This document shows positions 1-55,861 of a stretch of 64,000 bases of DNA, piece by piece. The translations under genes and the position numbers were made by a program. The stretch's first letter is position 1. Each line of letters starts with the position of its first letter. Below the pieces are notes generated by a model. The model ran no database searches and had not been told where the DNA came from. It saw only the letters and a program-made list of their open reading frames with translations. The DNA is from Malacoraja senta (taxonomy: Eukaryota): assembly GCA_038087875.1 (NCBI GenBank), contig JAXLNO010002127.1, positions 310,001-374,000 of the forward strand, read 5' to 3'.

Positions 1-525
1 GTCTGAAGAAGAGTCCCGGCCTATCCACGTCCTCCAGAGATGCTGCCTGACCCGCCGAGTTACCCCAGCGCTCTGTGACCTGAGCTAGCCGTGGTTTATT
101 GCTTTGCAATCATTTGTTAAATGTTGGCCATTTAACAGATTCTATCCGCAGAAACTGAGTCAGTGCAGTGAATATTCTGACTCATCTCATCAGCCGGAGT
201 GGCAGCTCACATTGATCAAGCATCCTCAGTCTTTGAGTGGAGAGTTACAAATTTACACTACTCTTTGAAAGAAAACCTACTTGCTAATTTTGTATATTTT
301 GGAAGCTCTTCAAAAGATGCCTCCTTGACATTGATCCTGCGAAAGCAGGAATTGAAGCTATCTTTCAAATCTTTTCAAAAACCCTCCATAGAATTGAAGC
401 AAGATTCAAACAACCTCAGTACAACATCGGCAGAAGGAACTGCAAATGCTAGTTGAACCAAAAAAGATGCAAAGCGTTGGAGTAACTGAGCAAGTCAGGC
501 AGCATCTCTGGAGAACATGGAGAAG

Positions 526-960
526 TGTAGGAAAGAACTGCACATGCTGGTTTAAATGGAAGGTAGACACAAAATGCTGGAGTAACTCAGCGGGACAGGC
601 AGCACCTCAGGAGAGAAGGAATGGGTGATGTTTCGGGTCGAGACCCTGCTTCAGACTGATGTCAGGGGAGGGGGCGGGACAGAGGTAGAATGTAGTCGGA
701 GACAGTAAGGCTGATGGGAGAACTGGGAAGGGGGAGGGGATGGAGTGGGAGGGAAAGCAAGGGCTATTTGAAGTTAGAGAAGTCAATGTTCATACCGCTG
801 GGGTGTAAGCTGCCCGAGCGAAATATGCTGTTCCTCCAATTTGCGCTGGGCCTCACTCTGACAATGGAGGAGGCCCAGGACAGAGAGGTCAGATTGGGAA
901 TGGGAGGGGAGTTAAAATGCTGAGCAACCAGGAGATCAGGTAGGTTAAGGCGGACTGAGC
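526..960 (-). mobile_element. Penelope-like element 3' fragment (GIY-YIG endonuclease C-terminus plus pLTR with hammerhead motif)
   Basis: Minus strand encodes remnants ...LSVLGLLHCQSEAQRKLEEQH..FRSGSLHPSGMNIDFSNFK*, followed by the terminal repeat. Confidence 0.8.
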
Positions 961-994
961 GAATAGGTGACGTTTCAGGAAGGGTTTTGACCTT

Positions 995-1381
995 AAACGT
1001 CGCCTATCCATGTTCTCCACAGATGCTGCCTGACCCGCTGAGTCACTCCAGCACTCTGTGAAACATCACCTATCCATGTTCTCCACAGATGCTGCCTGAC
1101 CCGCTGAGTTACTCCAGTATTCTGTGAAACATCACCTATCCATGTTCTCCACAGATGCTGCCTGACCCGCTGAGTTACTCCAGTATTCTGTGAAACATCA
1201 CCTATCCATGTTCTCCACAGATGCTGCCTGTCCCACTGAGTTACTCCAGTATTCTGTGAAACATCACCTATCCATGTTCTCCACAGATGCTGCCTGACCC
1301 ACTGAGTTACTCCAGTATTCTGTGAAACATCACCTATCCATGTTCTCTCCAGAGATGCTGTCTGACCCACCCGCTGAGTTT
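995..1381 (+). repeat. Tandem array of a 66-bp unit (about 5.8 copies) derived from the Penelope terminal repeat
   Basis: Unit aaacatcacctatccatgttctccacagatgctgcctgacccgctgagttactccagtattctgtg starts at 995, 1061, 1127, 1193, 1259 and about 1326. Confidence 0.92.
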
Positions 1382-1416
1382 CGGGTCGAGACTCTACTTC
1401 AGACTCTGTCGTACCT

Positions 1417-1672
1417 AGCGCACCCATCTTCACCACTCATGTGCCCCCCTGGGGTGATATCCCTTCTCTTGTTTGAGGGGTGTCCCAACCAGACTCTGCC
1501 CCTCAATGCCCAGCTGTGGAGGGCCCTAGACTGTGGTCCTCCCCCACAGAGCCTTGGCGTTGGCTGCACCGAACTTCAGTGCGTCCCTCAGCACGTACTC
1601 CTGCAGTCTGGAGCGGGCCAGTCGGCAACATTCCCTGACGGACATCTCGCTCCGCTGGGAGTCCAACAAGGT
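1417..1672 (-). mobile_element. Tx1-like (L1 group) ORF2 C-terminal fragment and 3' UTR
   Basis: ...SVRECCRLARSRLQEYVLRDALKFGAANAKALWGRTTV* resembles the C-terminus of vertebrate Tx1-type ORF2 proteins. Confidence 0.6.
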
Positions 1673-2867: not shown

Positions 2868-2886
2868 GTAATCACCTGTCACTTAA

Positions 2887-3355
2887 GATAGACACTAAAT
2901 AATGGAGTAACTCAGCGGGACATGCAGCATCTCTGCGTGATGTTTCGGGTCGACACCCTTCTTCAGACTGAGAGTCAGGGGAGAGGGAGATACAGAGATA
3001 AGGATGACGACGAAATATCAAAAGAGATGGAGATCAAGGCAAATGTAGAATAGATCAGCAAGGAGAATAGAGTAGAATAGTGAGGAGAAGGTAACAACAA
3101 AGCAAACAGAGATAAAATGTAAACAGGGGGACAGTCAGACTGGTCGGAGAGTTAGGATGGGGAGGAGTGAGGGAAAGCAAGGGTTACTTGAAGTTAGGGA
3201 AGTCAATGTTCATACCGCTGGGCTGTAAGCTGCCCGAGCGAGATATGAGGCGCTGTTCCTCCAATTTGCGCTGGGCCTCACTCTGACAATGGAGGAGGCC
3301 CAGGACAGAAAGGTCAGTGTGGGAATGGGAGGGGGAGTTAAAGCGTTTAGCAACC
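2887..3355 (-). mobile_element. Penelope-like element 3' fragment
   Basis: KLEEQRLISRSGSLQPSGMNIDFPNFK*-type endonuclease end plus pLTR. Confidence 0.8.
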
Positions 3356-3364
3356 TGTTACTTG

Positions 3365-3790: not shown

Positions 3791-3991
3791 CAGGCTTTGT
3801 TCGGCCCCCACCTCTATTCCAGCTTTCTCCACCACCAGTCAGTCTGAAGAAGGGTCCCAACCCAAATCGTCACCTGCCCATGTTCTCCAGAGGTGCTGCC
3901 TGACCCGCTGAGTAACTCCAGCACTCTGTGTGTGGACGTGTTGAAAGTCTCTGCTATCATTGCCTACTTTGCCACGATGCACAACTTGTGA

Positions 3992-4237
<246 letters not shown>

Positions 4238-4309
4238 TGAGCGTCTCTGTGGCACAGTGCCTCACAGCGCCAGAGGCATGGGTTCGATCCTGACCTTGAT
4301 GCTGTTTAT

Positions 4310-4476
4310 GCTGGAGAAACTCAGGCGGTGAGGTAGCATCTATGGAGCAAAGGAATAGGCAACGTTTCGGGTCGACACCATTCCTTCGCTCCATAGATGC
4401 TGCCTCACCCGCTGAGTTTCTCCAGCATTATTGTCTACCTTCGATTTGTCCAGCATCTGCAGCTCTTTCTTAAACA
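4310..4476 (+). mobile_element. Palindromic Penelope-derived mini-element inserted into an HE1 SINE
   Basis: Inverted arms. 14-bp direct repeat ttgatgctgtttat at 4296-4309 and 4477-4490. Confidence 0.8.
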
Positions 4477-4683
4477 TTGATGCTGTTTATAATCAGTTTA
4501 GTCTATTATCAAGTCTACCGAGGTACAGTGAAAAGCTTTTTGTTGCTTGCCATCCAGTCAGCGAAAAGACAACACACGGTTACATTCGAGTTGTCCACAG
4601 TTTGCAGATACAGTGTGGAGTTTGCACATTCTCCCTGTGACAGCGTGGGTTTCCGCCCGGTGCTCTGGTTTCCTCCCACATAT

Positions 4684-5620: not shown

Positions 5621-7551
5621 CATCCCAAAGACGCGCGGGTATGTAGGTGAATTGGCCTCTGTAAAGTGCCCCTTGTGTGTAGGGAGTGGATGAGAAAGTG
5701 GGAGAGCATGAACTAGTGTGTACGGGTGATCAGCGGTCGGTGTGGTCTCGGTGGGCCGAAGGGCTTGTTTCCACGCTGTAACCCTAATACTAAATCTTGA
5801 ATAAAGCTGTCTTAATGCAAGGATTTTGAGTAAGCAAAAAATTGTAGAGTACAGATTTAACATTTTAAGTACAGATTTACCATTCAGTACCCCAGCTTCC
5901 TATTGAACAAAATTCTTAAAAGTGACAGATTTCCAGATACACGAGCTCCAAGTATTGTGAACTCATATTTTTGAGAAAGGCTGCACAACAAATCATTCTC
6001 CTAAAGCTGAATAAATTTTGAATGCTCACACGTGCCTTCTTCTAAATGCCGTCTCTGTTCTCTTTGGTGTTTGGCGATTTATTGCACAAACCAGGTCAAC
6101 ACCTCAAGTCCGCGGATGAATCCAGGCTCGAAACTGAGGTTGAAGTCTAGGTTTATTATTGTCACGTGTACCGAGGTACAGGGAAAAGCTTTTGTCTGAG
6201 CACTATCCAGTTCAGCTTTGTGGTGAGAGGGGGAAAGTTTAAAGGAGATATACAGGGCAAGGACTTTCCACAGAGGGTGGTGGGTGCCTGGAACGCACAG
6301 CCAGGGGTGGTGGTGGTGGAGGCAAATACGATAGTGGTGTTTAAGTGGCTTTTGGATAGGCACGTGGATATGCAGGGAATGAAGTGCAGAGGGGTGAGAT
6401 TAGTTTAACGTAGCATCATGTTCGGCACCGACACCGTGGACCAAAGGGGCTTGTTGGATGTGCATCCTGTGGATGTGGATGTGGTATTTAACATACCTGG
6501 TGAATGGTAAAAATGGAGCTCACCACCACCGTGGAATTTCAGTTTCGAATCGACAATAAATGATGGCCTTGCCATGGATTCACACATCCCAGAGATAAAC
6601 TCAAAATTCCCACTTTAATAGATCGATTTATGATGAGTGTGAATACCATGTAACCCGGTATACTGTGTGCCCCAATCGTTAGTATGCCATTTATATTTTG
6701 CTTCTTATCATGTTGCAAGCAGTTTCGTTTCAGATTCTGTGGTTAGTGTGAACACCAGAAGCTAAAGCAATCCCTTTTATTTCTGGTGCGGAGTTACTCC
6801 AGCACTTTGTGTTTCTTTTCCCCCTTTTATTTCATAGGATCATGGCGTATAGGAGCAGATTTAGGCTCTTCGGCCCATCGAGCCTGTTCTGCCATTCGAT
6901 CAGAGCTGATCTATTTTCCCTTCTCAATCTTATTCTCCTGCCTTTCTCCCCTTAGCCTTTCATCCCCTTACTAATCAAGAACCTATCAATCTCCGCTTTA
7001 AACATACTCAATGACTTGGCCTCCACTGCCGTCTGTGGCAATGGATTCCACACAGATCTGCCACCCTCTGGCTAAAGAAATTCCTCCTCATCAATATTCT
7101 GAAGGTACGTCCTCGGCCCTCAGGTCCTAAACTCCCGACTACTGGAAACATTCTCTCCCCATCCACCATGTGGGCCACGTGAGCTCTGGAAGGGAATGTG
7201 CAAACTATTTTTATACAGCATTTAAAATGTTCTGTTCAAGTGGTCAATTCTCATTATGAGCCTCAAAACAGAGGGACTTCCAACAAAGCACAAAGTGCTG
7301 GAGTAACTCAGCAGGTCAGTCAGCATCCCTGGAGAACATGGGTACGTGGCAGCTGACAACCCAGTGGATAGACACAAAAAGCTGGAGTAACTCAGCGGGA
7401 CAGGCAGCATCTCTGGAGAGAAGGAATGGGTGACATTTCGGGACAAGACCCTTCTTCAGACTCACTCGAAACGTCACCCATTCCTTCTCTCCAGAGATGC
7501 TGCCTCTCCCCCTGAGTTACTCCAGCTTTTTGTGTCTATCTTTGGTTTAAA

Positions 7552-7954: not shown

Positions 7955-9072
7955 TTTAAACCAGCTCCTGCAGTTCCTTTTTACAACCCAGTGGTATGAA
8001 TATTGATTTCTCTAAATTCAAGTAGCCCCGGCATTCCCTCTCTCTCCATCCCTCCCCCACCCAAGTCGCAGCAGCTTCTCGTTTTCACCCAACAAACAAT
8101 GGCCTTTATCGTCTTTACTTTTTTGCATATCTTTCATTCATTGTTCTATCTCTCTCTTGTCTACATCTCTCGTTTCCCTTTCCCATGACTTTCAGTCTGA
8201 AGAATCTTCTCGACCCGAAACGTCACCCATTCCTTCCCTCCGGAGATGCTGCCTGTCCCGCTGAGTTACTCCAGCTTCTTAGGTCTGTCTTCGGTTTAAA
8301 CCAGCACCTGCAGCTCCTTGTGCAGGAAAGAACTGCAGATGCTGGTTTCAATCGAAGGTTGAGACAAACTGCTGGAGTAACTCAGCGGGACAGGCGGCAT
8401 CTCTGGAGAGAAGGAATGGGCGACATTTCGGGTCGAGGCCCTTCTTCAGACTGATGTTCAGTTCCTTCCTGCACATGGGTAGGTGACATTTTGGGTGAGT
8501 CTAAAGAGGGGTCCCGACCTGAAACGTCACCTATCCATGTTCTCTGGGGATGCTGCCCGACCCTCCGAGTTACTCCAGCACTTTGTGTCTTCATCTGCAT
8601 TGCCGGCAGCTTACATGTTGGCATTCAGACAGTTCTGACTGCTCCAGTTATCTTGGCAGAAGCAGCTGTGTTTACTGGCTGCTTCACTCCTCGTTAAAAT
8701 GCATTGACTGCAATAACAAACAGAAGTAAATAACACCTCATTACTAAATTGTCTTTGGTGTAAAGCCCTCAGCTTTGTGACTGATTCCTGGATCACATGC
8801 AGATTTATGAATGGCCTCTGATTTTCAGGAGACATTTGTTCAGGTCGAGATTGGTCATTCAACAGTGTTGCAGAAAGAGTTCTCTGGTCTAACAACGGGG
8901 AAAGGCAGGACAGAAAATGTTTGACATTCTGCTGACTTGAAAGGGCGGCACAGTGGCACAGCTGGTCGACCTGCTGCCGCACAGTGCCAGCCAGGGACCT
9001 GGGTTTGATTCTGGACTCGTGTGCTATTTGTGCGGAGTTTGCACGTTCTCCCTGAAGGATCTTCTTCTGAAG

Positions 9073-10815: not shown

Positions 10816-11472
10816 TGTTCTTTGTACCTACTCATACCCCCAGTTTCCTTCTCAGGCTGAAGGAAGGGTCTTGACCTGAAACATCGCCTATTCCTTCTCT
10901 CCAGAGATGCTGCCTGACCCGCTGAGTTGCTCCGGTATTTAGTGTCAATCCAAGGAGAGACTGGCTTTGTTTTGCTGGAGGCAGAAGCCACTGCCAACAT
11001 GAAGGGATTAAAGCTCTACTAATACAATTCAGCAACAAAGGCAATTTTTTTGGCATTCTTTTAGCAAAGTCTTTGTTTAGCTTTTGGCTGGTTGCGCAGA
11101 GCACACTGAGTCTGTCATTAGGAAATATTACACCCTGCACTCAGTGCAATGCTCAAAGTGCTGGAAGAACTCAGCGGGTTGAGGCAGCATCTGTGGAGCG
11201 ATAGGCAAGCGACGCTTCGGGTCGGGACCCTTCTTCAGACCGTTCGTCAGACAGTATCATTCCCTCCGCAGATGTTGCCTGACCCACTGAGTTCCTCCAG
11301 CACTTCGTGGTTTTCCCAAGATTCCAACACCTGCAGTTCCTAGTGTGTCTTCATTGCAATAATGAACAAGTTGAGGCTGGTCACACGAGAGCACTGTTTG
11401 AATGAATCATCCAACAAGTTCATGATTAAATTAGAGCTGTCTCGGCTACAACTCGATGCTCACAGTAAAGAA

Positions 11473-12486: not shown

Positions 12487-12748
12487 GGGGTGAGGACAAA
12501 GCCTGGTGAGTGATAGGTGGAAACGTAGCAATAATGAACTGCAGATGCTTGTTTACAAAAAAAATGACAGAAAGTACTGGAGTAACAGCAGGTCAGGCAG
12601 CATCTCTGGAGAACATGAATAGGTGATGTTTCGGGTCGAGACCCCTCTTCAGATAGCATGTCTCCATTGATAATTACATGCTAAAAATAATTACCTTCCT
12701 TCTTTTCTGTTCCGTGTTGTGTGACTGTGACATTTTGTTTTCCTGAAG

Positions 12749-13616: not shown

Positions 13617-13825
13617 AAGGGTCTCGGCCTGAAATGTCATCTATTCCTTCGAAGGGTCTCGGCCTGAAATGTCATCTATTCCTTCGAAGGTTCTCGACTG
13701 GAATTGTCACCTATTCCTTCGAAGGGTCTCGACCCGAAACGTCACCTATTCCTTCGAAGGGTCTCGACCGGAAATGTCACCTATTCCTTGAAGGGTCTCG
13801 ACCCGAAACGTCACGTATTCCTTCA
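13617..13825 (+). repeat. Tandem array of a 35-bp unit (6 copies) covering the stem II-GAAA-cleavage-site part of the hammerhead motif
   Basis: aagggtctcgacccgaaacgtcacctattccttcg-like units start at 13617, 13652, 13687, 13722, 13757 and 13791. Confidence 0.88.
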
Positions 13826-14045: not shown

Positions 14046-14096
14046 GGTTCATATGATAAAAAAGCATCATTGAATCATGATAGTTTAACATCACGT

Positions 14097-14395: not shown

Positions 14396-15478
14396 CCTTC
14401 AAGGACAATTTTCTTTGACTGGCGTGGAGGGGGCATCTTGGACAGCGTGGGCGAGTTGGGCTGAAGGGCCTGTTTCCGTGCGGCGTGACTGTGCGGCTGG
14501 TTCTCTGGCTCACCTCCAACAAAGCACAGAGGGCGCCTGATGAATGATTTGTCGAACTGGACTTTGATGTCGACCAGATATTGCACCGCTCACTTCCAGA
14601 CACCCAGCACCTGCTGAAACAAGAAAGAGACCGGTTACACCAATGCGGCGTCTCATCATCTCCTTCCTTTCTACATCCCAATGGACCGGCTCTCTTGTCC
14701 TGTATCTGTATACTGTGGACAGTTCCCATTGGAATCATGGATTGTGTTTCTGCTGACTGGTTAGCACGCGACAAAAACCTTTCACCGTACCTCGGTACAC
14801 GTGACAATAACCTAGTCTGAAGAAGGGTTTTGGCCCGAAACGTTGCCTATTTCCTTCGCTCCATAGATGCTGCTGCACCTGCTGAGTTTCTCCAGCATTT
14901 TTGTGTACCTAAACTACTAAGTTGCCTCAGTTACTTGTGACCTGCTAGGAGAGGTTGACACCAATCGTGGCGACAGGTTCTGAGCCCCCATCACCACTCT
15001 CTGTGTTAAAGATTTGCCCCACACATCTCATTTAAACTTTGAGTTTGAGTTGAGTTTAGTTTATTGTCACGTGTAACGAGGTACAGTGAAAAGCGTTTGT
15101 TGCGTGCTACCCAGTCAGTGGAAAGGGCCTCTCTCACCTGTAAGCTATGCCCTCTACTCTTTGGCATTTCCACCCTGGGGAAAAAGGTTCTGACTATCTA
15201 CCTTACCGACACCTCTCTGCATTTTATATACCTACTGTATCAAGTGCCACCTCAATCTCCAATGATCTGGAGAAAATAATCCAAGTTTGTCCAACCTCCT
15301 CTCCAGCTAAGCCCCTCTAGTCCAGGCATCACTCTGGTAAACCCCTTCTCCTCTCCAAAGCCTCCATCCGCATCCTTCATGTAAAGGGGAGACCAGAACT
15401 GCACACCACACTCCACATATGGGCTCAACCAAGTTTCATAACACTGCAACATGACTTCCTGGTTTTAATTTTAGATCA

Positions 15479-18025: not shown

Positions 18026-19449
18026 ATGTCAAAGACTAGATGGAACAGCTTTAAGATGAGAGGGGCGAAGTTAAAGGGGGTGTGCGGGGGAAGTTATTTT
18101 ACACAGAGGGTGGTGAGTGTCTGGAACGCGCTGCCGAGGATGGTGGTGGAGGAAGAAATAATAGCGTGTTTAAGATTCAATGATTAGAGAAGTTCCAATC
18201 TGTGATGGAGATGGTGGCGGTGATATTATGTGAAGTAGGAAAGGTTTGGACAGGTCAGGTTTAGAGGGATATAGGCCAAATGCAGGCAGGTGGGACTAGT
18301 GTAGGTGGGACATGTTGGTCAGTGTGGGCAAGTTGGGCCGAAGAGCCTGTTTCCACGCTGTATGACAATGAAATGCTGAAATCTATAGTGGCCAATTATA
18401 AGGCTGGTGGTCTGTCTTCGATTTACAATTATACCAAGCCAAGTAACCTACAAACCTTTGTCTTTGGAGTGTGGGAAGAAACCAGAGCACCCGGAGAAAA
18501 CCCTCGAAGGAAAATTGTACAAACTCCATACAGACAGCACCCGCAGTCAAGATCGAGCCTGTCTCTGCTGCTGTAAGGCAGCAATACTGTGAATCAGACA
18601 TGGTTCGCCAAGTAGATATCATCAGCCATCAGTCAGATCCAATTTGAGGACATGGTTGTATTGCAATGTGCATGGTATGCATGAACTCCATCCGCATGTG
18701 AATGAGGATCCTGGAGAGAGTTGCGGAGGTGACGGCTGCAACACTGGCAGTGGCCAAGGGTGGCCCGTGACGAACGTCCAAGGAAGGTCAGCGAGTGGGG
18801 TGGTGAGACGGGGTACTGGAGGGCAGTGAGGTGGGGCACCCCAAATTGTTACTGTAAGGAGACAACATTTTGAAGCTGTGTACCTAGCCAAGTGGGAGAA
18901 GCTCGAAGAGTACCAAGGCATTACGAAAGGATTTGAAAGAACACCGAAGAAATGGGGTGAGAGCAGAAAAGGAAAAAGGAAAGAAAGAACTGAGCGTAAG
19001 ACTTCATGTAGAAACAAGGAACTGCAGAAATAGACTCAAAGTCGCTGGAGCTGCAGATGCTGGAGACTACAAGGAACTGCAGATGCTGGTTTACAAAAAA
19101 AAGGATTCAAAGTGCTGGAATAACTGAGGGGGTCTGGCAGCATCTCTGGGGAGCATGAATTCTTCAGTCCAAAGAAGGGTCCTGACCTGAAACGTCACCT
19201 CTCCATGTTCTCCAGAGATGCTGCCTGACCCGCTGAGTTACTCCAGTACGTCCTATTTGATTAAGAGACTGTCTTGGTAAAGAATCACAATGAGCAGTTT
19301 CTGAAACACATCTCAGTAATGCTAATCTAGCAGCTCCTGTCTGAGTGTATCTACTGCTTTATCTAAAGTTACTGGAGAACTTCAGAAATCGAAAATGATA
19401 AAGATCTGAAAACACATGTAGAAGGCTGTGCAAAGGCAAGAGGTCGTCA

Positions 19450-22506: not shown

Positions 22507-23210
22507 CTTCATGGAATGATGTACTTGCATCCTAGCTCTCTCTGTTCTGCATCACTGCACAGGGCCCCATCACTTACTGTGTAAGTCCTGTCCTGGTTTG
22601 ATGTGTTCTATTGAGAGTTGATCCATATTAAAGTATTCAATAGTTTAAAAAACAAAAGTGCTGGAGTAACTCAGCGGGTCAGGCAGCATCTGTGGAGGGA
22701 ATGGACAGGCGATGTTTCGGGTGGGGACCCTTCTTCAGACAGATTATAGTGAAGCTGGAAGAGAGGTGGTGGTGGGACAAAGCCTGACAAGTGAAAGGTG
22801 GAGACACAGGGAAATGCAGATGCTGGTTTACAAAAAAAAGAGACAAAGTGCTGAGTAACTCAGCAGATCAAGCAACATCTCGAGAGAATATATGGATAGA
22901 AGGCATTTTGGGTCAGGACCAAGAGCACTGTTGAACTACTATCTACCTCATTAGTGACCCTAGATGGGGCTTTGCTGGCTTTACCTTGCACTAAACGTTA
23001 TTCCCTTATCATGTATTTGTACACTGTAAATGGGTCGATTGTAATCATGTATTGTCTTTCCACTGACTGGATAGCACACAACAAAAAGCGTTTCACTGTA
23101 CCTCGGTACACGTGACAATAAACTAAACTGAACTGAACCCTGAATAGATTGAGAAGTTTTTAAGAAGGAACTGCAGGTGCTGGAACAATTGAAGGTTGAC
23201 AAAAATGCTG

Positions 23211-23332
23211 GAGAAACTCAGCGGGTGAGGCAGCATCTATGGAGCGAAGGAATAGATCTGAAGAAGGGTCGAGACCTGAAACGTCACCTATTCCTTTGCT
23301 CCGTAGATGCTGCCTCACCCGCTGAGTTTCTC
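23211..23332 (+). ncRNA. Candidate type I hammerhead ribozyme with about 47-bp stem I (Penelope-derived)
   Basis: Arm 23211-23257, CTGAAGA 23258-23264, A-GGGTC-ga-GACCT, GAAA 23278-23281, CGTC, then arm 23286-23332 complementary to the first arm. Confidence 0.55.
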
Positions 23333-25865: not shown

Positions 25866-26804
25866 ACTATTTACACTAGGGTCAATTTGCAATTATACCA
25901 AGCCAATTAACCTACAAACCTGTTCGAGAGGGAGACAGATCAGTGAATTGAAGATAGACCATTCTGTAAGAATCGGAGTAAAATGGTTCAGATCATTTGG
26001 GAAATTAGATTGAAAACCTTTTCTTCCCCTGTAGTCAGGCTTGGCCAAGATCTGCTATCTCTGAATTCTATCCACAGACATTACATCGACAAATTCTTTG
26101 CTGTCAAATGCTACCGAGAGGCATGTTTTGTTCCAATTGTAGAGGTGAATCCCATCGGGTGGAAATGGTATATGTTTTTAGATTTGAATCAAATCGGCTT
26201 TCTTCCCTGTAAGAATTGGAAAAGATAATCTGGTGTCGCAGAAAATAGCTCATTTAAATGATGCTCTGAAGTCCCACAGTCTCCCTTTGGATAATTTCTT
26301 CTGGATTTCTGTAGTTCATCTACGCGCCTAATAATGTCTTTCTTCTTCCATTATTTAGTGCTTCATTCATTTTTAATTCATGCTAAACCATAAAGCAATC
26401 AAATATGTTGTTTGTTCTAAGCTTTTGGGGTAGCTTTGAAAAATGTACACCTTCTCTCCACTCCTCGCTGCTCAAAACGTTTAAGTACTAGAGAGGAGAC
26501 CAAGAGAACTGCAGGTGCTGGTTTACAAAAAGGCACAAAGTGCTGGAGTAACTCAGCAGGTCAGGCAGCATCTCTGGATAACATGGAGAGGTGATGTTTC
26601 GGGTCAGGACCATTCTCCGGTACTAAATTTTGGTGGAAGTATAAAACAGATGCTCACTTCAGTATCCTGATCAGCTTTTCCTAACAAAATCCATAGAGTG
26701 TATTAAACCGGCTGCCTTTAAAGATTTTTAAAATTATACTAGTACATTGGCATTATGTACTCATCTTCATGTTCGGCACAGACATTGTGGGCCAAAGGGT
26801 TTAT

Positions 26805-32980: not shown

Positions 32981-33924
32981 TAACGATCCCAGACTAAGTC
33001 TCACGCACATTGTCAGGCCAGCTCTTTTAAATCTCCATAAGGTCATAGGATGTAATGATTAGATTGTACCTGCCCCAAATAACTCTTCTGGCAGCTCATC
33101 CCGTAGGGTGATGGAGTCTAACCGTACAGAAAAACTCGTCCATGTCAACCAAGATTCCCCATCTACGCTAGTCCCATTTGCCCATGTCTGGCCCATATCC
33201 TGCCAAATCTTTTAGACAATAGACAATAAACAATAGGTGCAGCATTAGGCCATTTGGCCCTTCGAGCCAGCATCGCCATTCAATGTGATCATGGCTGATC
33301 ATCCCCAATCAGTACCCTGTTCCTGCCTTCTCCCCATATCCCCTGACTCCGCTATTTTTAAGAGCCCTATCTAGCTCTCTCTTGAAAGCATCCAGAGAAC
33401 CTGCCTCCACCACCCACTTTTATATGTATGTACCTGTCCAAGTGTCTTTCAAATGTTGCTATACCCACCCCCCTTTGTGTGAAAAGTTGCTCGTCAGATT
33501 CCTGTTAATTTTCCCCCCTCTCACCTTAAAGGTATGCCCTCTAGTCCATGATTCACCAACCTCAAGGAAGACTGTGTGTATTCACCGTATCTGTACACTT
33601 CGCCATCTTGTACACCTCTACAGAATCATGCTCCAAGCAAACAAACCTTAGCCTGCCCGGCCTCTTCCTATCTGAAGATGCAAGGAACTGCAGGTGCTGG
33701 TTTACGCAAAAGGAGACAAAGTGCTGGAGCAACTCAGCGTTGTCAGGCAGCACCTCTTGAGAACATGGACAGGTGACGGTTCGGGACTGAAGAAGGGTCC
33801 CGACCCAAAACGTCAACCACCCATGTTCTCCAGAGATGTTGCCTGAGCCACTGAGTTACTCCAGCACTTTGTGTCCCCTCCCTATTTGTATTTGTAAAAG
33901 TGTGGTGTTTTTATTCCACTTTAG

Positions 33925-34025: not shown

Positions 34026-34224
34026 GTAAGTCTCGGACTGCAGTGCCCTTCATTAGTAGCAGCAAACATCTTGCACACTCACACATTGTTCAGCGGCTCA
34101 GCACGGGAATGGCCACAGGGATTAGTCTTGGACTCGGGGTTTGATTGCCTCATTTTCTGACAGATGGGAGTGTCAGGTAAAGGTTGGAATACGTTGAAAA
34201 CAGAGCGATCATCTTTCATTAATA

Positions 34225-34370
34225 GGTAGACAAAAATGCTGGAGAAACTCAGCGGGACCCGAAACGTCGCCTATTCCTCCGCTCCATAGATGCTGCCTCA
34301 CCCGCTGAGTTTCTCCAGCATTTTTGTTTACCTTCGATTTTTCCAGCATCTGCAGTCCTTTCTTCAACCA
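34225..34370 (+). mobile_element. Palindromic Penelope-derived mini-element
   Basis: TSD ttcattaata at 34215-34224 and 34371-34380. The 5' piece is inverted. Confidence 0.78.
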
Positions 34371-34879
34371 TTCATTAATATGTGTAGACAACTGCAAATG
34401 AAGGAGGGGGGGGGGGGAGGCACGCTCTCGAGGGCAGATACTTGGATCGGGATGGACGTAGAGTTAATATTTGGATGGAAACAGGCCCTTCAGCCCACCG
34501 AGTCCATGCTGACCATCGATCACCCAGTTCACACTAGTTCTACGTTATCCCACTTTCTCATCCACTCCCTGCACATTAGAGACAATTTACAGAGGGCCGA
34601 TTAACCTACAAACCCGCACGTCTTTGGGATGAGGGAGGAAACCGGAGCACCCGGAGGAAACCCACGTGGTCACAGAGGGAGCGTGCAAATCCCACACAGA
34701 CCTCACCCGGGTCTCTGGCACTGTGTGGCAGTGGCTCTACCAGTTGCGCCACTGTGCCGGCCTTCTTTAGATATGGGCCAGGTGAGACAGGTGGGACTGG
34801 TGTAGATGGGGAATCTTGGCTGGCGTGGTCAAGTTGGGCTGAAGGGCTTCTTTCCCTGCTGTATGACCCTGATGACCAT

Positions 34880-35300
34880 GACTCTACATCGGTGAGACCA
34901 AGCGCAGGCTTGGCGATCCCTTCGCCCAACACTGGTTCGCATTAACCAGCCTGATCTCCCGGTGGCCCAGCACTTCAACTCCCCCTCCCATTCCGAATCC
35001 GACCTTTCTGTCCTGGGCCTCCTCCATGGCCTTAGTGAGTCCCCCTGCAAATTGGAGGAGCAGCACCTCATATTTCGCTTGGGTAGTTTACACCCCAGCG
35101 GTATGAACATTGACTTCTCCAATTTCAGGTAGACCTTGCTTTCTCCCTCCATCCCCTCCCCTTCCCAGCTCTCCCACAGCCCACTGTCTCCGCCTCTTCC
35201 TTTCTTCTTCCACCCCCACATCAGTCTGAAGAAGGGTCTTGACCCAAAACGCTCCATAGTTGCTTCACCCGCTGAGTTTCTCCAGCATTTTTATCTACCT
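34880..35300 (+). mobile_element. Penelope-like element 3' fragment with the YIG motif of the GIY-YIG endonuclease
   Basis: LYIGETKRRLGDPFAQH/..VRINQPDLPVAQHFNSPSHSESDLSVLGLLH...KLEEQHLIFRLGSLHPSGMNIDFSNFR*, followed by ctgaagaagggtcttgaccc. Confidence 0.85.
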
Positions 35301-35383
35301 ATGACTCTACGAAATGGAGGTGAGATAAGGATTGTTGTCATTATTATGTTTGGCGGTAACCGCTTCTGCTTACTTCCCTACAG

Positions 35384-37083: not shown

Positions 37084-37730
37084 GTCGAAAGGAACTGCAG
37101 ATGCTGGTTTAAACCGAAGATAGACACAAAGGGCTGGAGTAATTCAGTAGGTCAGGCAGCATCTCTGGAGAAAAGGAACGGGTGTGTTTCGGATCAAGAC
37201 CCTTCTTCAAACTGCGAGTCAGGGGAAAGGGAAATGAGAGATATAGATGGTGATGTAGAGAGATATAGAACAAATGGATGAAAGGTATGCAAAAAAGTAA
37301 CGATGATAAAGGAATCAGACTATTGTTAGCTGTGGATAGACACAAAAAGTTGGAGTAACAGCGGGTCATGCAGCATTTCCAGAGAAAAGGAATGGGTGAC
37401 GTTTCAGGTCGAAACCCTTCTTAAGACTAAAGTTGAAAGTCTGAAGAAGGGTCTCGTCCTAAATCAACACCCATACCTTCTCTCCAGAGATGCTGCTGCC
37501 TGTCCCGTTGAGTGACTCCAGCATTCTGTGTCTATCTTCGGTTTAAACCAGCATCTGCAGTTCCTTCCTACACATTGTTAGCTGTGAGCTAGGTGAAAAT
37601 GAGTTACAGACAATGAGACTCAACAAGACGACTTTGAAGCTGGTACGACCTGGGTGGGGGAGGGGATGGAGAGAGAGGGAATGCAAGAGAGGGAATATTC
37701 ATACCGCTGGGTTGTAAGCTGCCCAAGCGT
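37084..37730 (-). mobile_element. Penelope-like 3' fragment containing a nested palindromic pLTR copy (about 37335-37573)
   Basis: pLTR plus endonuclease-end remnant. attgttagctgtg is duplicated at about 37322 and about 37574. Confidence 0.7.
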
Positions 37731-40410: not shown

Positions 40411-40689
<279 letters not shown>

Positions 40690-49870: not shown

Positions 49871-52800
49871 ATGCTATGGTTAAATATTAACAGGTGTTTT
49901 GTGCATCATTGAAAGGAACAGTTATTCTTCATAATTTAAAGTTAGTCTTTTTAAACAGTTGTAAACTTGAGTTGTAAAACTTCTGACTTCATTAAATTAA
50001 ACTCGCTGTGATACAGTATCTTCTTTGACTATCTTAATCTCGTTCCCTTGAAGAGATGATATGTGTTTTGATCTGCCTTGTGTGAAAGCATTTCATGATT
50101 ATAATAGAGACACAAGGAACTGCAGATGCTGCTTTACAAAAAAAGATACAAAGTGCCAGAGTAACTCAGTGGGTCAGACAACATCTCTGGAGATCGTGCA
50201 TTGGTAACATTTCGGATCGGGACCCTTCTTCAGACCTGTGTGTGCAAAAATGAGCCTGAAGAAGGGTCCCAAACCGAAACGTTACCAATCCATGTTCTTC
50301 AAAGATGTTGCCTGCCCCGTTACTCCAGCATTTTGTATCTTTTTTTTAATGATTAAAATCGAGACAGATTGTTATAAACAACTCCTGTTGCAAGATTCAG
50401 TGATGTTGTGTTCCAAGAAAGTATTCCAATCTTTCTAAAACCAGGGAGCAATGAAGGAAAATGGCCACTGATAAAATTCAATTATCAAAGTAGGTATGTA
50501 TACTAAGAACAAGAGAAGGGTGACATGCAGATTGGGTAAGATGCCTTAAGGTTGGAGGAAGATTATGTGGAACTTAAGCACTGACCTAGACAGGGCCAAA
50601 TGACTTCAGTTCTACATGATCCTTGCTATGTGTCTAGTGACAGTATGGAGATTGAATGGAATTGGTTACATGTTCTCGAGTCATACGACATGGAGACAGA
50701 CCCTTTGGTCCAACTCATCCATGCTGACCCAGATGCCCCATCTAAGCTAGTCCCGTTTGCCTGTGTTTGGCCCATATTCTTCCAAACCTTTCCTATCCAT
50801 GTACCTGTCCAAGTATCTTATAAATGCTATAGGACCTGCCTCAACTACCACCTCTGGCAGCTCGTACCATATATCCACCACCCTCTGAGTGAAAGTATGT
50901 GTCCCGGAACAAAATGGACATTGTGTTATATTTGATTACATGTACCCAGACAGGATGGAGACAATGTTATTACTGTATGTGTCCTGTGAGGAGTGAGGAG
51001 TCCACGTGGACATTTTGTCAATTCCCAGTTTGCATCAGTTTAACAGTTGGGTCACATTGTACCATTATTCTTTGGGTTTTATTTTATTTGGCAGGTGAAC
51101 CTTGTTATATATGGACAAGATCAGAATGTTTTACTTAGAATAGAAAAACGTGATCCAATATTCATTGCACAATGGAAAGAGAAATTAACACTGCAGAATT
51201 ACTTCGATCATATTTAATATGAATGATACATGCCAATGATTCTTCACAAAAAAAATCAAGATAAATATCTGCGTAAGGTTTCTTCACTATGGATGGTAAT
51301 TCCTTCATTGAATTTGATAGAATCTACGTTTAATAAACAGTCGTCAAAATAAGCAGATTATTTTTTATTATTTTCTAGTCTAGAAGCATAATGCCGTCTC
51401 TTTTGTGTAGGAAGGAACTGCAGATGCTGGTTTATACCGAACATGGACACAAAATGCTGGACTAACTCAGAGGGTCAGGCAGCATCTTGGAGAAATGGAA
51501 TAGGTGACATTTTGGGTCAGAACCCTATTTCAGACTGAAACATCTATCTTGTACTGTCTCATTTAATTACTTAACTCTGGGCATGGTGTTGTGAAGTGAG
51601 AATATGCTATGGAGCTCCAGATTACTATCAGGATTTCAAATAACCATTGTCACAGGGAATGGTTTTGTCTAATTGTCTAATTTTGTCTCAGGGAATTGGG
51701 GTAAAATTTCAAAACTAACTTTTTAAAAAATATTGCCTTGTTTCTTTGCTAGGATAAGTCTTTGTCATGTGTACTATTTTATAACTGCATCTTAATGATA
51801 AATAACTGGTGATCATTTTCCTGGGTACAATAATCCAGTGACTTTGTTAATGAGTTTATATTTCCACCATTCCAGATGAATGAAACTGCATTGAATTTTA
51901 TAGTTTGTGGACTGACTCTAGAAATAAATGACTGTATAAATCGTTTGATTAGCTGGCTGCAAAGAGAGGTGTAATTGGCAGAAGATTTTGTGAGGTGATT
52001 CTACTTCTGCTGTCTGATAGGATTGCTGTGCCAACTAACTACTTTCTAGAGCTGTCTGGTTTCATCTTCATTTTGTGGTTGGATTTATGGTCAGCGTGAG
52101 CCTGAATGAAGTTTTATAATTATGTGTGCTGTCTCGCCAAGGCAAGATACATTCTCACCTCCATACCCACTGTCATAAAATTGAGGGGTTATCGGCAAAG
52201 GGGGGTGGCATCCACAAATCCTCTCCTTTCGATTACCATTTGGGGAAGAGTATTCAAGTCAACACTCTGCGGTGTTGCCTTACAGCGGCCTGCATTCCAA
52301 AACTTCCTTTTAAAAAGTTTGCTTGAATTTCCCAATTTTTTTTTTGTTTGAATATTTCAGATGAAGAGTTTGGCAATATTCTTCCATTCCCGATCCAATT
52401 TTAAACTGTAAATAGATCTCTGGAGTAAGTCATGCAAAGGAATCTTGATGTTTTAACTCTATAATGTACATGGTGACCAATTTGTGTTGACACATGACTT
52501 TCTCTGGTTGTCCAGAAATGTTTTGGCCAAGATTGAAAATGATTGACCAAAACGTATGAATCACTTGATCTTATTCCACAAAAAGAACTTCACAAAGTCA
52601 GCATTTTGACTATTGTCTCAATGGTGGTATGAAATGGCCTTAAATAAATGACCTCTATTGGGCTATGTGCGATACATCATGGCCTGATGGATTCCAACAG
52701 CTGAGTGGGCACTAATGTACCAAATTCCTTGGCAGATCACCAAGGAATGGAACTGACGTATATTCTAACAGCCCAGTCCTCTCAAAGCTGGAAGCCCACC

Positions 52801-53161
52801 AAAGGATCTCGACCCGAAACGTCACCCATTCCTTCTCTCCAGAGATGCTGCCTGTCCCGCTGAGTTACTCCAGCATTTTGTGTCAACCCTTTACCACACC
52901 TTGGTTATTTCCTTCAGGCCTTTGTGACCAGAACTCTGCAGTATTCTGGTGCATTATGCAGTTTCTGTTGAATATCTTCAGAGAGTACTCTTATAAGTTG
53001 ACATTCTGTATGTTTTAGTTGGTTGTTGTACAATATCCAAACAGTTGGGTGCTAAAATTAGAAGCAGAAACAAGGAACTACGGATGCTGGTTTAAAGAAA
53101 AAGATGCAAATTGCTGGAGTAACTCAGCGGGTCAGGCAGCATCTCTGGAGAACATGGATAG

Positions 53162-53636
53162 ATCATAAGATCATAAGTGATAGGAGTTGAATTAGGCCAT
53201 TCAGTCCCTCAAGTCTACTCCGCCATTCAGCCCATCAAGTCTACTCCGCCATTCAATCATGGCTGACCTATCTCTCCCTCCAAACCCCATTCTCCTGCCT
53301 TCTCCCCATAACCCCTGGCACCCGTACTAATCAAGAATCTATCTATGCCTTAAATATATCATTGACTTGGCCTCCACAGCTTTCTGTGGAAATAATTCCA
53401 CAGATTCACCACCACTGACTAAATAAATTCCTCCTCATCTCCTTCCTAAAAGAACGTCCTTTAATTCTGAAGCTATGACCTCTAGTCCTAGACTCTCCCA
53501 CTCGTGGAAACATCCTCTCCACATCCATTCTGTCCAAGCCTTTCACTATTCTGTATGTTTCAATGAGGTGCCCCCTCATTCTTCTAAACTCCAGTGCATA
53601 TAGGCCCAGTGCCATCAAACGCTCATCACATGTTAA
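53162..53636 (-). mobile_element. CR1 3' fragment
   Basis: LTCDERLMALGLYALEFRRMRGHLIETYRIVKGLD... Confidence 0.85.
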
Positions 53637-54602
53637 CTTACTCGGCCCGAAACGTTGCCTATTTCCCTCGCTCCATAGATGCTGCTGCACCCGCTGAGTT
53701 TCTCCAGCATTTTTATCTACCTTTGATACGTGACGTTTCAGGTCAGGACCCTTTTTCAGACTGACCCGACCCAAAATGTCACCGACCCATGTCCTTCAGA
53801 GATGCTGCCAGACTCACTGAGTTACTCCAGCACATTGTGTTTTAGGTGCTAAGATTAGTTTGACGACTTGATTCTCTCGTTGCCCATATCTCACTATTAT
53901 TTGAGTATATTCCAATTGTCAGCCCTTTGCATTGAACTGAACTGCAATTCATTTGCCTCAGTTCTACATGTTTCATCTATTCTGGTGCTTCTGTACTTCC
54001 CTGATTGTTTCATCAATGCTTACTGGTCCTCCTCTCCAATCCCAAATGCACACATAGTCAATTGTCAGTGCAGTTCTGAACACAGGTTATTTAAGTGCAT
54101 TCTTCTTGTCGAGTCCACACACAAGATTAGAAGTTGTTCAGCCAGAGCTGAACACACACTCGGCATCTGCACAATTGTGTGTCTTGTCACTTCTTGTGGT
54201 TTTTGTGCGTGGTAGTAGAAAGATTGGTGGAAACAGGGCCGTGACGTGAACGCTCTTTCCTTGACCCCATTTAAGTGTATTGAAAACAGCAGGCAGCATT
54301 CAGTGAGTCATCTCAACCACAATATATTTCTGGTCTTATGGCCAATTCTTTATCCATCTACACTTATTACTTGACATATGCAGTGTTTAACCCGATTTAA
54401 CAGCCATTAATGGATAGGTTTGCAGAAATGCAGGGACAATATATCACATGAGCTCTTGGAACAACGAAAATCTCCAATCTCCTTGACATTTTGGTGTGGC
54501 AGTCAGAAACCGTGTTAGTTACATGGTGGACTTCTATATGATAATCCTCAGACTTGTTCCCAATTATAGTTACAGGCATAAACCAAATAATCCGTCAAGT
54601 TT

Positions 54603-54807
54603 TTATGTTTAAGAAGGAACTGCAGATGCTGAAAAATCGAAGGTAGACAAAAATGCTGGAGAAACTCAGCGGGTGAGGCAGCATCTATGGAGCGAAGGAA
54701 ATAGGCAACGTTCCGGGTCTGAAGAAGGGTTTCGACCCAAAAGGTTGCCTATTTCCTTCGCTCCATAGATGCTGCCTCACCCGCTGAGTTTCTCCAGCAT
54801 TTTTGTC
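54603..54807. mobile_element. Palindromic Penelope-derived mini-element
   Basis: About 65-bp inverted arms around a mutated hammerhead core. TSD taatc(c/t)gtcaagttt at 54588-54602 and 54808-54822. Confidence 0.82.
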
Positions 54808-55861
54808 TAATCTGTCAAGTTTGTCATCTTTGTTTCATTCCAGTGAAACCTTGCTACGCATCGGCATCTTAAGAGATTGTTAGCCCTTGTCTGATATCAG
54901 TTCTTTTCGCTTAAAGAAAGGTCCCGACCTGAAACGTCACCTATCCATGCTCTCCAGAGGTGCGGCCTGACTCGCTGAGTTACTCCAGAACTTTGTCTTT
55001 TTTAGTGTATAAAGTTTTTTTTTCCACCGTAAACGCCATGTACTGTTCTCAGCTGCACAAATCTTTGCCACTGCATATTGAGGACAAGAAGTAATCAGAG
55101 CTGACAGGATCAGGACACTGAACAGTTATGTTCAGGCTCAGAATGGATTGGCTAGGCATTACAGGAATATTATATTACCTGTCCCACAGTAGGGGCTATA
55201 AACCTGTATGGTCTAGTCCCTAAGAGAATGCACAGGGCTATCAGGAAATATCACGTTGCATTAAGGAAGTGTGCTCAAGTCTACTATGGAAAAGAATACA
55301 TTACGCTCCATCCATTCACCCACAGTCTGCTGGATTCTGGAATGCAGCCAAGTCCTGTGACTAAATACACTTTTCCATTCCACTCATCTATTTATAGTTT
55401 GTACTCATTTATCATTTTATTAAAACAAATTCCACATATACATGGCCTGCCATTTCACAGCATGGTAATAATGCATCATATTTGTCAGTTGCCATTCTGC
55501 TTTCTATAACAGTGAACGTTCACCTCTGCTCTTGAGAAAATGCAAACTTTTGTAATTGAATGCCTTTTTACATTAAATTTAATCTCTGTCTTAATCAAAA
55601 GTACAGAACCTTCCCATTTATTTTTGATTTGGATTTCCATTTATAAAAACTAAATGCAGAAAATTTCACTGAAAGAGGAAGCTGAAAATTAAGGATCTTC
55701 AGAATTACTTACAGTAGGTTTAGAATATTTCGATGGATATGAAAAACAAATAATAAAAGGAAAAGAAAATATCCTGGATTGGATCAAAATCATTTTTGAC
55801 AAGAGAACCAGCTTCAGTCCAAAGAAGGGTCCTAACCCATAACATCATCTATCCATGTTCC

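Follow-up and report, generated by a model that had tools for sequence, protein, structure and literature searches.

The commonest short repeat of a 64-kb window is the broken-off 3′ end of a hammerhead-bearing Penelope-like element

In the window, the whole 64-kb stretch of DNA analyzed here, the commonest short repeat derives from a Penelope-like element (PLE), of which it is the broken-off 3′ end bearing a hammerhead motif. The copies are very probably fossil 3′-terminal fragments of a canonical endonuclease-bearing PLE, with reverse transcriptase (RT) plus a GIY-YIG domain at its C terminus, carrying a minimal hammerhead (min-HHR) motif in a genome of the cartilaginous-fish type; the literature suggests that such a motif could cleave as a dimer. 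Almost every copy in the window is a decayed fossil, and the feature is real but largely ordinary. The idea of a PLE-borne minimal hammerhead has been known since 2014 and is not new, and neither a new ribozyme class nor a new class of mobile element is involved.

The pattern CTGAAGANGGGTCNNGACCCGAAA, written out as CTGAAGA-N-GGGTC-NN-GACCC-GAAA and allowing up to three mismatches, matched 25 sites on both strands of the window, whereas 100 dinucleotide shuffles of the window averaged 0.01 matches and never exceeded 1. An nhmmer profile covering the entire repeat detected 73 fragments amounting to 6,660 bp (10.4% of the window, about 1.1 fragments per kb), and 37 of them cover the whole motif. 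The cleavage site is spanned by 58/73 fragments, and thus their templates were uncut RNA. The roughly 30 motif copies counted in an earlier sequence-only reading are a fair estimate, and each position it listed is a match or lies within a few bases of one. That reading also claimed at least four subfamilies with diverged flanks; four are real, and a consensus was built for each. The copies are about 7-9% diverged and share a shape, with a fixed 3′ end, a variable 5′ truncation and target site duplications (TSDs).

The origin of the repeat is evident from its contiguity with a coding sequence and from the homologues of the latter. In four copies, 545-790(-), 2881-3210(-), 7999-8306(+) and 35106-35304(+), an ORF ending in ...NIDFSNFK* is followed about 110 nt downstream by the motif:

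545..790, minus strand: PLE 3′ end with the last GIY-YIG ORF codons, a ~110-nt pyrimidine-rich 3′UTR, the motif at 631-654 and a ~80-nt tail; A9 to C and 16.2 G to A render the core defective.
2881..3210, minus strand: PLE 3′ end with an EN ORF remnant (3187-3357), an inserted segment within the 3′UTR, plus the motif at 2943-2966 (minus), whose boxes are intact, whose helix II has 4 bp and in which 16.2 has changed from G to A.
7999..8306, plus strand: PLE 3′ end up to the ORF end, with the motif at 8197-8220; the 5′ strand of helix II is replaced and the copy is therefore dead.
34896..35304, plus strand: EN ORF remnant (34896-35120), 3′UTR, motif (35226-35249, G12 to A) and tail; YIGETKRRLG is encoded at 34882-35103 in a frame other than that of the remnant.

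The placement of the motif directly downstream of a GIY-YIG end, noted before at three loci, was therefore confirmed at a distance of about 110 nt, and the copy at 7999-8306(+) is the fourth. The window's own ORF pieces are frameshifted fragments without any Pfam match by themselves, and their homologues (P0116, P0057, P0130, P0010) contain RVT_1 and/or GIY-YIG, which together with the contiguity of the ORF end bears out the PLE origin proposed earlier. Of the relatives recovered, that of the little skate (locus L001) is the closest; there, one ORF contains both an RT motif (FADD) and a GIY-YIG motif (LIY...YIGETKRRLGDRF) and is followed 114 nt later by the same hammerhead motif. The combination of RT with a C-terminal GIY-YIG that defines an EN+ PLE is thus found through the homologues and L001. 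In a distant PLE, L002, whose EN piece is 44% identical, the same motif architecture recurs about 400 nt after the ORF in different letters (CUGAAGA-A, helix II GUGC/GCAC, GAAA, palindrome AAUU). The motif occupies the terminal non-coding region on the 3′ side of the RT and GIY-YIG element in the four window copies and L001; in the window it was seen only 3′ of the ORF, and no full-length element with two terminal repeats was found.

The consensus motif consists of CUGAAGA, one unpaired A, a helix II of 4-5 bp, GAAA and an ACGU palindrome that replaces helix III; position 17, which comes next, is C or U. The CUGANGA box is present in all four subfamily consensuses, and its columns 11-17 are at least 90% conserved except for G13. 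The base between A9 and G10.1 is A in 25 of the 27 aligned copies and G in the other 2, and is also A in L002. The G10.1-C11.1 pair (columns 19-30), which closes helix II, is GC in 18, GU in 7 and otherwise in 2 (n=27). GAAA-CG-U-C/U is the consensus of every subfamily, and the 15.2-16.2 C-G pair is intact in 15/27 copies, the remainder being CpG-decayed. As helix II has at most 5 bp with a 2-nt loop, it is effectively 4 bp long. Helix I has two regularly paired positions, the third and fourth being unpaired in 19/27 copies, and the earlier caveat that stem I is short was correct.

These features match the min-HHRs reported in 2014 in PLE terminal repeats, with thousands of solo copies in lower vertebrates (Cervera & De la Pena, PMC4209133). 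The published motifs have a base between 9 and 10.1, a G10.1-C11.1 pair, a palindromic 15.2-16.2 that lacks a loop 3, and pairs on opposite strands (PMC4209133). The window motif shares with the metazoan family the type-I box order, the single unpaired nucleotide separating A9 from G10.1, the pairing of G10.1 with C11.1, the loss of helix III to a palindromic 15.1-16.1 (ACGU), a position within the terminal non-coding region of an RT and GIY-YIG element, and the abundance of thousands of solo copies with pairs on opposite strands. The additional base that follows A9 and the palindromic ACGU, both pointed out beforehand, are published traits of the PLE minimal type-I hammerhead, and such traits imply that any cleavage would need a dimer. 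Cleavage by min-HHR dimers is attributed to Lunse, Weinberg & Breaker (RNA Biol 2017), as cited in PMC6765202. The helices, in contrast, fall short of the 4-5 bp helix I and enlarged 6-8 bp helix II of the min-HHR: helix II has 4-5 bp here versus 7-8 bp in the Schistosoma families and 6 bp in D. virilis, and helix I has 2 bp here versus 4-5 bp in the Schistosoma families, 2 bp being published only for D. virilis (PMC4209133). The lineages also differ, in that cartilaginous fish are not listed in the main text of PMC4209133. The known range of hammerhead-bearing Penelope elements thus gains a skate-like cartilaginous-fish lineage with a very high copy density. Canonical type-I hammerheads (Rfam Hammerhead_1, RF00163, and relatives) share the CUGANGA, GAAA and UH core, but the window motif has no helix III, no loop-loop tertiary contacts and a helix I of only 2 bp, and it matches no covariance model at the thresholds tried.

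Conservation among the subfamilies is highest within the motif. Only 2/30 motif columns, loop II and H17, vary among the four consensuses, versus 8/17 just downstream, 4/34 in the tail core and 5/6 upstream. The extra conservation of the core relative to the rest of the repeat, on which the sequence-only reading had made its case depend, is present among the subfamily consensuses. Its statement that stem II pairing is largely kept also stands, with 89.6% of cells paired, but the covariation it had looked to does not appear: every change alters one side of a pair (G-C to G-U, or a mismatch), and compensatory changes are absent among the copies.

The inserted copies, on the other hand, decay freely. 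CpG columns are mutated at 16-38% versus 6-9% in other columns, in agreement with the CpG decay of the core noticed earlier. As the non-CpG mismatch is 9.4% in the core versus 6.5% in the tail, the inserted copies are not under selection. The core is intact in only 2-3 of about 37 copies, as seen among the following motifs:

14817..14844, plus strand: intact motif (CUGAAGA-A, helix II GGGUU/GGCCC, GAAA, CG, UU).
23258..23285, plus strand: intact motif inside a foldback (helix II GGGUC/GACCU, GAAA, CG, UC).
50206..50233, minus strand: near-intact motif in a left foldback arm; 15.2 is U, giving U.G in the palindrome.
50256-50279: right-arm partner of the preceding motif, helix II broken.
12629..12652, minus strand: boxes and helix II intact, 16.2 G to A.
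22715..22738, minus strand: subfamily D, with all boxes intact and a helix II of 4 bp; 16.2 G to A.
1379..1402, minus strand: defective, A9 and helix II mutated; abuts a 66-nt array.
3844..3867, plus strand: defective, G12 to A and A15.1 to U.
7436..7459, minus strand: apex motif of foldback 7364-7554, with a mismatch in helix II and 15.2 C to U.
8426..8449, minus strand: helix II mismatch, GGGCC/GACCC.
8501..8524, plus strand: defective, G5 to A.
11215..11238, minus strand: defective, GAAG replaces GAAA.
19169..19192, plus strand: defective, in a foldback, U4 and G5 mutated.
24797..24820, minus strand: in a TSD-flanked foldback, helix II mismatch.
26597..26620, minus strand: defective, CCGGAGA.
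30906..30929, minus strand: defective, in a foldback, G8 to C and G12 to A.
33787..33810, plus strand: defective, in a foldback, G12 to A.
37187..37210, minus strand: defective, C3 to U.
37402..37425, minus strand: defective, G5 to U.
53736..53759, minus strand: defective, G8 to A.
54719..54742, plus strand: defective, in a TSD-flanked foldback, G12 to A.

No two direct copies within 1 kb of each other in the window both carry intact motifs, and thus no cleavage is expected here. That the motif is near-invariant among active lineages and decays after insertion amounts to a clean natural experiment, from which the motif appears to serve the element rather than the host.

The hammerhead covariance-model search proposed in the sequence-only reading gave no match to any Rfam model in the window, at the gathering score or at E up to 10, nor when the two intact copies were submitted by themselves with the same E limit of 10. 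The double-hammerhead fold is predicted at about -6 kcal/mol versus -21 to -29 kcal/mol for competing dimer folds, on thermodynamics only. RNA ends just after GTC/GTT, also suggested as a sign of cleavage, showed no excess of at least a fifth of the local depth at the predicted cut, or elsewhere across 7200-8700, in reads from a poly(A) library, which does not capture small or circular RNAs.

The insertions themselves follow PLE anatomy. Known PLE insertions are heavily 5′ truncated and flanked by TSDs; the main copy is met head-to-head by an inverted, 5′-truncated one, and only one end has a tail, of 30-40 bp (Craig et al. 2021, PMC8557442; Frangieh et al. 2024, PMC11167929). The same inverted truncated copies, one-sided tail and TSDs are found in the window, where many insertions are extremely 5′-truncated solo tails or head-to-head tail pairs with TSDs and an extension of one arm. 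There are 15 head-to-head pairs versus a single tail-to-tail case. TSDs of 9-15 bp were found by exact match at 4/14 foldbacks, those of the others being undetectable in this way, and the extension of about 30 nt occurs on one foldback arm only:

4296..4490: head-to-head foldback, arms 4308-4386 (minus) and 4378-4447 (plus), 14-bp direct repeat (null P 0.005), ~30-nt tail extension on the right arm.
24682..24965: head-to-head foldback, 15-bp flanking direct repeat (null P 0.004).
34215..34380: head-to-head foldback, 10-bp flanking direct repeat (null P 0.018), tail extension on the right arm.
54594..54822: head-to-head foldback, 9-bp flanking direct repeat (null P 0.037), tail extension on the left arm.

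Unlike known PLE insertions, both arms are truncated here to about 60-130 nt, so that each insertion forms a foldback of ~170-250 nt whose apex is the motif; the junctions also cluster at the motif. The inner arm ends lie at model positions 118-172, around the motif, in 27/30 cases. Among non-tandem fragments, 19/61 start at positions 129-140, directly 5′ of CUGA (binomial P 1e-9 versus uniform truncation), although this clustering may be partly an alignment artefact because the subfamilies cannot be aligned upstream of position 131. Junctions reading ...CGG-GTC-TGAAGAAGGG recur at 54715, 30934 and 33783 in different subfamilies. In a TRF search, the only two tandem arrays derived from the repeat both lack the CUGA box:

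995..1368, plus strand: 66-nt unit x 5.6, the tail from the GAAA box on, without CUGA box and helix II.
13617..13824, plus strand: 35-nt unit x 6, helix II, GAAA and cleavage-site region, without CUGA box.

The intact element would thus comprise an ORF stop, a ~110-nt pyrimidine-rich 3′UTR, the 28-nt minimal type-I hammerhead motif and a 110-140-nt tail, inside which reverse transcription probably starts. Extension on both strands and internal RT initiation have been demonstrated for PLEs in vitro (PMC11167929). By analogy, the PLE protein would nick and extend both target strands and initiate reverse transcription internally, which would account for the pairs being inverted and the tail one-sided. 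When active elements in tandem are transcribed, two motifs might pair through ACGU into a double hammerhead that could cut after GUC or GUU, probably inefficiently, as the literature on related motifs suggests.

The sequence-only reading went further and proposed a genome-wide retrozyme-like system. In its full form, the short copies would be an active non-autonomous family whose tandem transcripts are cut by paired hammerheads, circularized and reverse-transcribed by the PLE enzyme. The very high fragment density and the enormous summed depth in DNA and RNA runs favor this, as do the PLE-derived retrozymes of other vertebrates and of the one chondrichthyan sampled, whose PLE origin was proposed in 2026 (Li et al., bioRxiv 10.64898/2026.07.22.740005). 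Non-LTR retrozymes of animals also share the partner-requiring type-I hammerhead and the PLE terminal-repeat origin, but they form tandem direct repeats of complete units and circular RNAs (Cervera & De la Pena 2020, PMC7229834; Li et al. 2026); the window repeat has no such tandems, and the retrozyme reading is therefore unsupported. Circles would moreover give permuted ends, not the fixed 3′ ends, variable 5′ truncations, head-to-head pairs and TSDs seen here. The uncut templates, the lack of intact direct pairs, the neutral decay of copies whose cores erode at least as fast as their flanks, and the absence of poly(A) read-end pile-ups at the threshold used likewise make an active retrozyme family quite improbable. 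Still harder to credit is a chance hammerhead-like string in a hairpin SINE or MITE of unrelated origin: long perfect hairpins, scoring weakly in Rfam as miRNA precursors, are common among the copies and no hammerhead model matches, but the GIY-YIG ORF end is contiguous in four copies and L001, each foldback joins two copies of one PLE tail at junctions that vary, and all four features that emerged unprompted in published PLE min-HHRs recur here.

A more serious contender, though one we still consider doubtful, is that conservation of the 30-nt block reflects some role besides self-cleavage, catalysis being negligible in this lineage. It might be a transcription initiator, as TCAGT just 5′ of CUGA fits YYANWYY; in that case transcription would begin some 3 nt ahead of the motif, and RT from the nearby tail would yield full-length mini-copies of ~140 nt. 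Alternatively, the palindromic helix II, with ACGU, may be the only site for cDNA snap-back or pairing of like-sense cDNAs, producing the head-to-head foldbacks. The clustered fragment starts and inner arm ends agree with such roles, the CGG-GTC junctions would fit a cDNA ending in GAC that pairs with its own helix II GTC, and the active fold is thermodynamically disfavored. In the green anole PLE, HHR mutations left in vitro insertion unchanged and no RNA-seq ends were found at the HHR site (PMC11167929), and Naiad PLEs, which lack an HHR, proliferate well (PMC8557442). The hammerhead boxes, however, coincide exactly with the invariant positions, and loop II and H17 with the variable ones, a pattern that would not be predicted from a role in promotion or annealing. 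Such a role does not sit easily with L002 either, which keeps the boxes and changes the letters of helix II and the palindrome; the possible artefact in the 5′-end clustering weakens it further. The fossil PLE ends with a minimal hammerhead remain the preferred reading.

It is rather unlikely that the hammerhead block matters mainly as a structural and initiation landmark, and less as a nuclease, whose TCAGT start, tail priming and helix II snap-back or cDNA annealing generate a hairpin-forming, PLE-driven non-autonomous family. If so, the family would spread as self-contained foldback mini-insertions of ~170-250 nt, roughly one per kilobase, distinct from circular retrozymes. That 5′ ends and foldback junctions cluster at the motif provides a concrete lead on how Penelope elements build inverted insertions.

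We found 25 matches to the motif string CTGAAGA-N-GGGTC-NN-GACCC-GAAA at ≤3 mismatches in the window, 10 on the plus and 15 on the minus strand, against a chance expectation of 0.01 in dinucleotide-preserving shuffles. All coordinates listed in the sequence-only reading, which had proposed a minimal hammerhead ribozyme carried by a Penelope-like element (PLE), were recovered among the pattern matches. Comparison of the flanks of the copies showed that the motif is embedded in a longer repeat, and in the self-comparison of the window repetition peaks (~54 matches) in the ~40 nt further downstream rather than at the motif. Iterating nhmmer gave a 247-position profile that extends from an ORF end through the 3′UTR and the motif (positions 138-165) to the tail; it collected 73 fragments with a summed length of 6,660 bp (10.4% of the window), 37 of which contain the whole motif. 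In four copies the profile match extends back into an ORF ending in ...GMNIDFSNFK and the stop codon, and the ~110 nt between the stop and the motif are strongly pyrimidine-rich, with a CAG ending two bases ahead of CUGA.

PLE 3′ ends reaching the ORF, and the adjoining 3′UTR
545-790, minus strand: PLE 3′ end reaching the ORF
2881-3210, minus strand: PLE 3′ end reaching the ORF
7999-8306, plus strand: PLE 3′ end reaching the ORF
35106-35304, plus strand: PLE 3′ end reaching the ORF
660-760, 8100-8195 and 35120-35225: pyrimidine-rich 3′UTR of the element

Pfam found neither a reverse transcriptase (RT) nor a GIY-YIG domain in the endonuclease (EN) pieces or in all 92 stop-free pieces of at least 95 aa in the window, because the copies are too broken and frameshifted, and a word-indexed protein search with a 75-aa piece returned short unnamed fragments only. 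An exhaustive phmmer search with this piece (34896-35120) matched 345 proteins. In the longer homologues P0116, P0057, P0130 and P0010, Pfam detected RVT_1 and/or GIY-YIG, and the match lies at their C-terminus. Canonical PLEs are defined by an RT domain with a GIY-YIG nuclease C-terminal to it. As the homologues share this architecture, the motif had been correctly placed directly downstream of a GIY-YIG end. The nearest relative is P0010; its ORF lies on a chromosome in assembly GCA_028641065.1, listed in a paper as little skate. The ORF at its locus contains the RT motif FADD and a textbook GIY-YIG stretch, LIY...YIGETKRRLGDRF, and ends in the C-terminus seen in the window copies; the motif recurs there, starting 114 nt past the stop. 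Of nine contigs examined for relatives, one held this informative skate locus, one a distant PLE that has a minimal hammerhead of its own, and one a degenerate copy; the others lacked DNA or sequence downstream. One PLE relative, in a different assembly, carries CTGACGA-A-GGTC-GAAA-CGTC (L004:3532-3560) 123 nt past the EN stop, a version of the motif whose helix II has collapsed through a palindrome-internal deletion. Among database proteins that match the EN tail, P0012, P0044 and P0011 are GPCR, NYAP or DUF4518 gene models fused to a PLE endonuclease end, probably annotation chimeras due to the abundant repeat.

Minimal hammerheads occur in the terminal repeats of every PLE examined by Cervera and De la Peña (2014, PMC4209133), where four features emerged outside the search descriptor, among them families with many variants, a conserved G10.1-C11.1 pair and a palindromic 15.2-16.2. 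In coelacanth and Xenopus the same study found solo copies in the thousands, and it described opposite-strand pairs spaced 100-700 bp. All published sequence features of these hammerheads are present in the window consensus (CUGAAGA, A, GGGUC-YC-GACCC, GAAA, CG, U, C/U), but its helices are short. As the sequence-only reading had cautioned for stem I, just two positions of helix I are regularly paired in the aligned copies, and helix II has 4-5 bp; the Schistosoma families have 4-5 bp in helix I and 7-8 bp in helix II, and Drosophila virilis, the only species for which a 2-bp helix I is reported, has a helix II of 6 bp. The distant PLE (L002, public assembly), 44% identical in the EN piece, shows the same layout ~400 nt past its ORF in other letters, with GUGC/GCAC as helix II, AAUU as palindrome and GC/GC as helix I. 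The covariance-model check proposed earlier matched no Rfam hammerhead family at the gathering score or at E up to 10, either in the window or with the two intact copies alone, and yielded only weak, miRNA-like matches over the foldbacks. This is expected because the motif lacks helix III, and membership thus rests on descriptor-type features and genomic context. These features and the ORF context give good support to the motif's assignment as a minimal hammerhead borne by a PLE. PLE hammerheads as a kind have been known since 2014; new details here are their presence in a cartilaginous-fish lineage, the shortness of the helices, the density and the way the junctions cluster.

Outside CpG columns, the inserted copies differ from their subfamily consensus by 9.4% in the core boxes and helix II and by 6.5-6.8% in the downstream tail; CpG columns reach 16-38%, which confirms the suspected CpG decay. 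When pairs were counted in 27 aligned copies, neither helix II nor the palindrome showed a compensatory change, and covariation values among them fall under most shuffles. Only six copies in the window passed a strict scan (CUGANGA, helix II of at least 4 bp, GAAA); 14817 plus and 23258 plus alone also keep CG-U-H, and 50233 minus retains it with a U.G pair. The inserted copies therefore show no sign of selection. In contrast, the four subfamily consensuses, taken to represent lineages once active, are nearly invariant across the motif.

Variable columns among the four subfamily consensuses
130-135, 5′ flank: 5 of 6
136-165, motif block: 2 of 30
166-182, segment after the motif: 8 of 17
183-216, tail core: 4 of 34

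Within the motif block, variation is confined to the base in loop II and to C or U at position 17, the two motif positions that a hammerhead leaves free in the stretch where variation is seen. Thus, the extra conservation of core and stem II predicted earlier is absent among copies and present among consensuses. Judging from these alignments, the motif was maintained in the active elements and is not maintained by the host.

The 3′ end, ...AAACCAGCATCTGCAGTTCCTT..., lies outside the first profile, and many copies end 30-40 nt short of it. In the window, 15 fragment pairs are arranged head-to-head with tails outward, and a single case is tail-to-tail (convergent; 8286-8360, palindrome centred near 8323). 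Exact direct repeats of 9-15 bp bracket four of the foldbacks.

Exact direct repeats around foldbacks
4296/4477
24682/24951
34215/34371
54594/54814

The repeat spacing indicates a ~30-nt extension on one arm alone in three of these four. The same anatomy, an inverted 5′-truncated copy and a tail of 30-40 bp confined to one end, is published for PLE insertions (Craig et al., 2021, PMC8557442). It fits the behaviour in vitro of a purified PLE protein, which cuts and extends both target strands and has two internal start sites for reverse transcription (Frangieh et al., 2024, PMC11167929). The foldbacks at 7387-7518, 23213-23331, 54664-54789 and 4314-4422 are near-perfect hairpins of 100-130 nt that match plant miRNA precursor models of Rfam at ~37-44 bits, well below gathering; such hairpins could be substrates for small-RNA production. 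Further high-copy segments adjoin PLE tails at 7551-7960, where summed contig depth reaches 10^5-10^6 in a DNA run and many short contigs stop at 7551 and 7840-7950.

Among 61 non-tandem fragments, 19 begin at model positions 129-140, directly 5′ of CUGA (P ~1e-9 versus uniform truncation), although alignment may account for part of this clustering, since the subfamilies are unalignable upstream of position 131. The junctions of the foldbacks, unlike this cluster, are unambiguous. Almost every inner arm end falls at model positions 118-172, and the form ...CGG-GTC-TGAAGAAGGG is common to three junctions from two different subfamilies. This form would result if a cDNA ending in ...CAGAC annealed through its three terminal bases to the GTC in its own copy of helix II and then self-primed. 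The conserved TCAGT ahead of CUGA fits an initiator consensus, so transcripts may begin there. We regard self-priming at helix II and a transcript start at TCAGT each as rather unlikely. The pyrimidine tract and CAG before CUGA also resemble a 3′ splice site, and an intron ending at helix I has been reported for D. virilis Penelope; spliced copies as the source of the 5′-end cluster were rejected, as the upstream flanks compared in the window share no common exon and no spliced copy was found.

The motif lacks its own helix III, and on this model the sole route to cleavage is a double hammerhead, in which the ACGU of one copy would pair with that of another and helix I would form in trans. With nearest-neighbour energies, which leave out tertiary contacts, this fold is predicted at about -6 kcal/mol with each of the four consensuses and competing dimer folds at -21 to -29 kcal/mol, one of them pairing the core GAAGAAGGG with CCCAUUCCUUC just downstream. 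Because tertiary contacts are outside the model, these values are only an indication, and they agree with reports that metazoan PLE hammerheads have little activity in vitro. Two other geometries fail. A type-III hammerhead with the foldback arms as helix III would have only 6 nt from the cut to C3, leaving helix I unable to form, and a cut after the GUC overlapping C3 would give partner strands of ≤2 bp.

The predicted cut is spanned by 58 of the 73 fragments, whose templates were therefore uncut there. From a poly(A) RNA run of the same or a related organism, about 10,600 reads were placed on 7200-8700 at 90% likeness. Both strands are equally represented, 97% of the reads continue into unrelated flanks, and no excess of molecule ends or starts was flagged in reads blind to cleavage of less than one fifth of molecules and to small or circular RNAs. 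Thus, the repeat is transcribed mostly as a passenger within longer transcripts. The same negative result on RNA ends was obtained for the green anole PLE (PMC11167929).

The sequence-only reading had also envisaged a genome-wide, retrozyme-like system. The window contains two tandem arrays of PLE tail pieces.

Tandem arrays
995-1368: 66-nt unit x 5.6, 96% matches, PLE tail piece without the CUGA box
13617-13824: 35-nt unit x 6, 89% matches, PLE tail piece without the CUGA box

As both arrays lack CUGA and no direct pair of copies with two intact motifs occurs in the window, the retrozyme reading has no footing there. Both arrays are young, and the 35-nt unit spans exactly from GAAGG to its complement CCTTC, one whole predicted hairpin. 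Elsewhere, 54217-54280 on the minus strand matches the HDV-like CPEB3 model of Rfam below threshold (26.8 bits where gathering requires 35; window-wide E 0.007), and the match is 14 nt short in its middle; it may represent a degenerate HDV-like ribozyme from a LINE, or a chance match.
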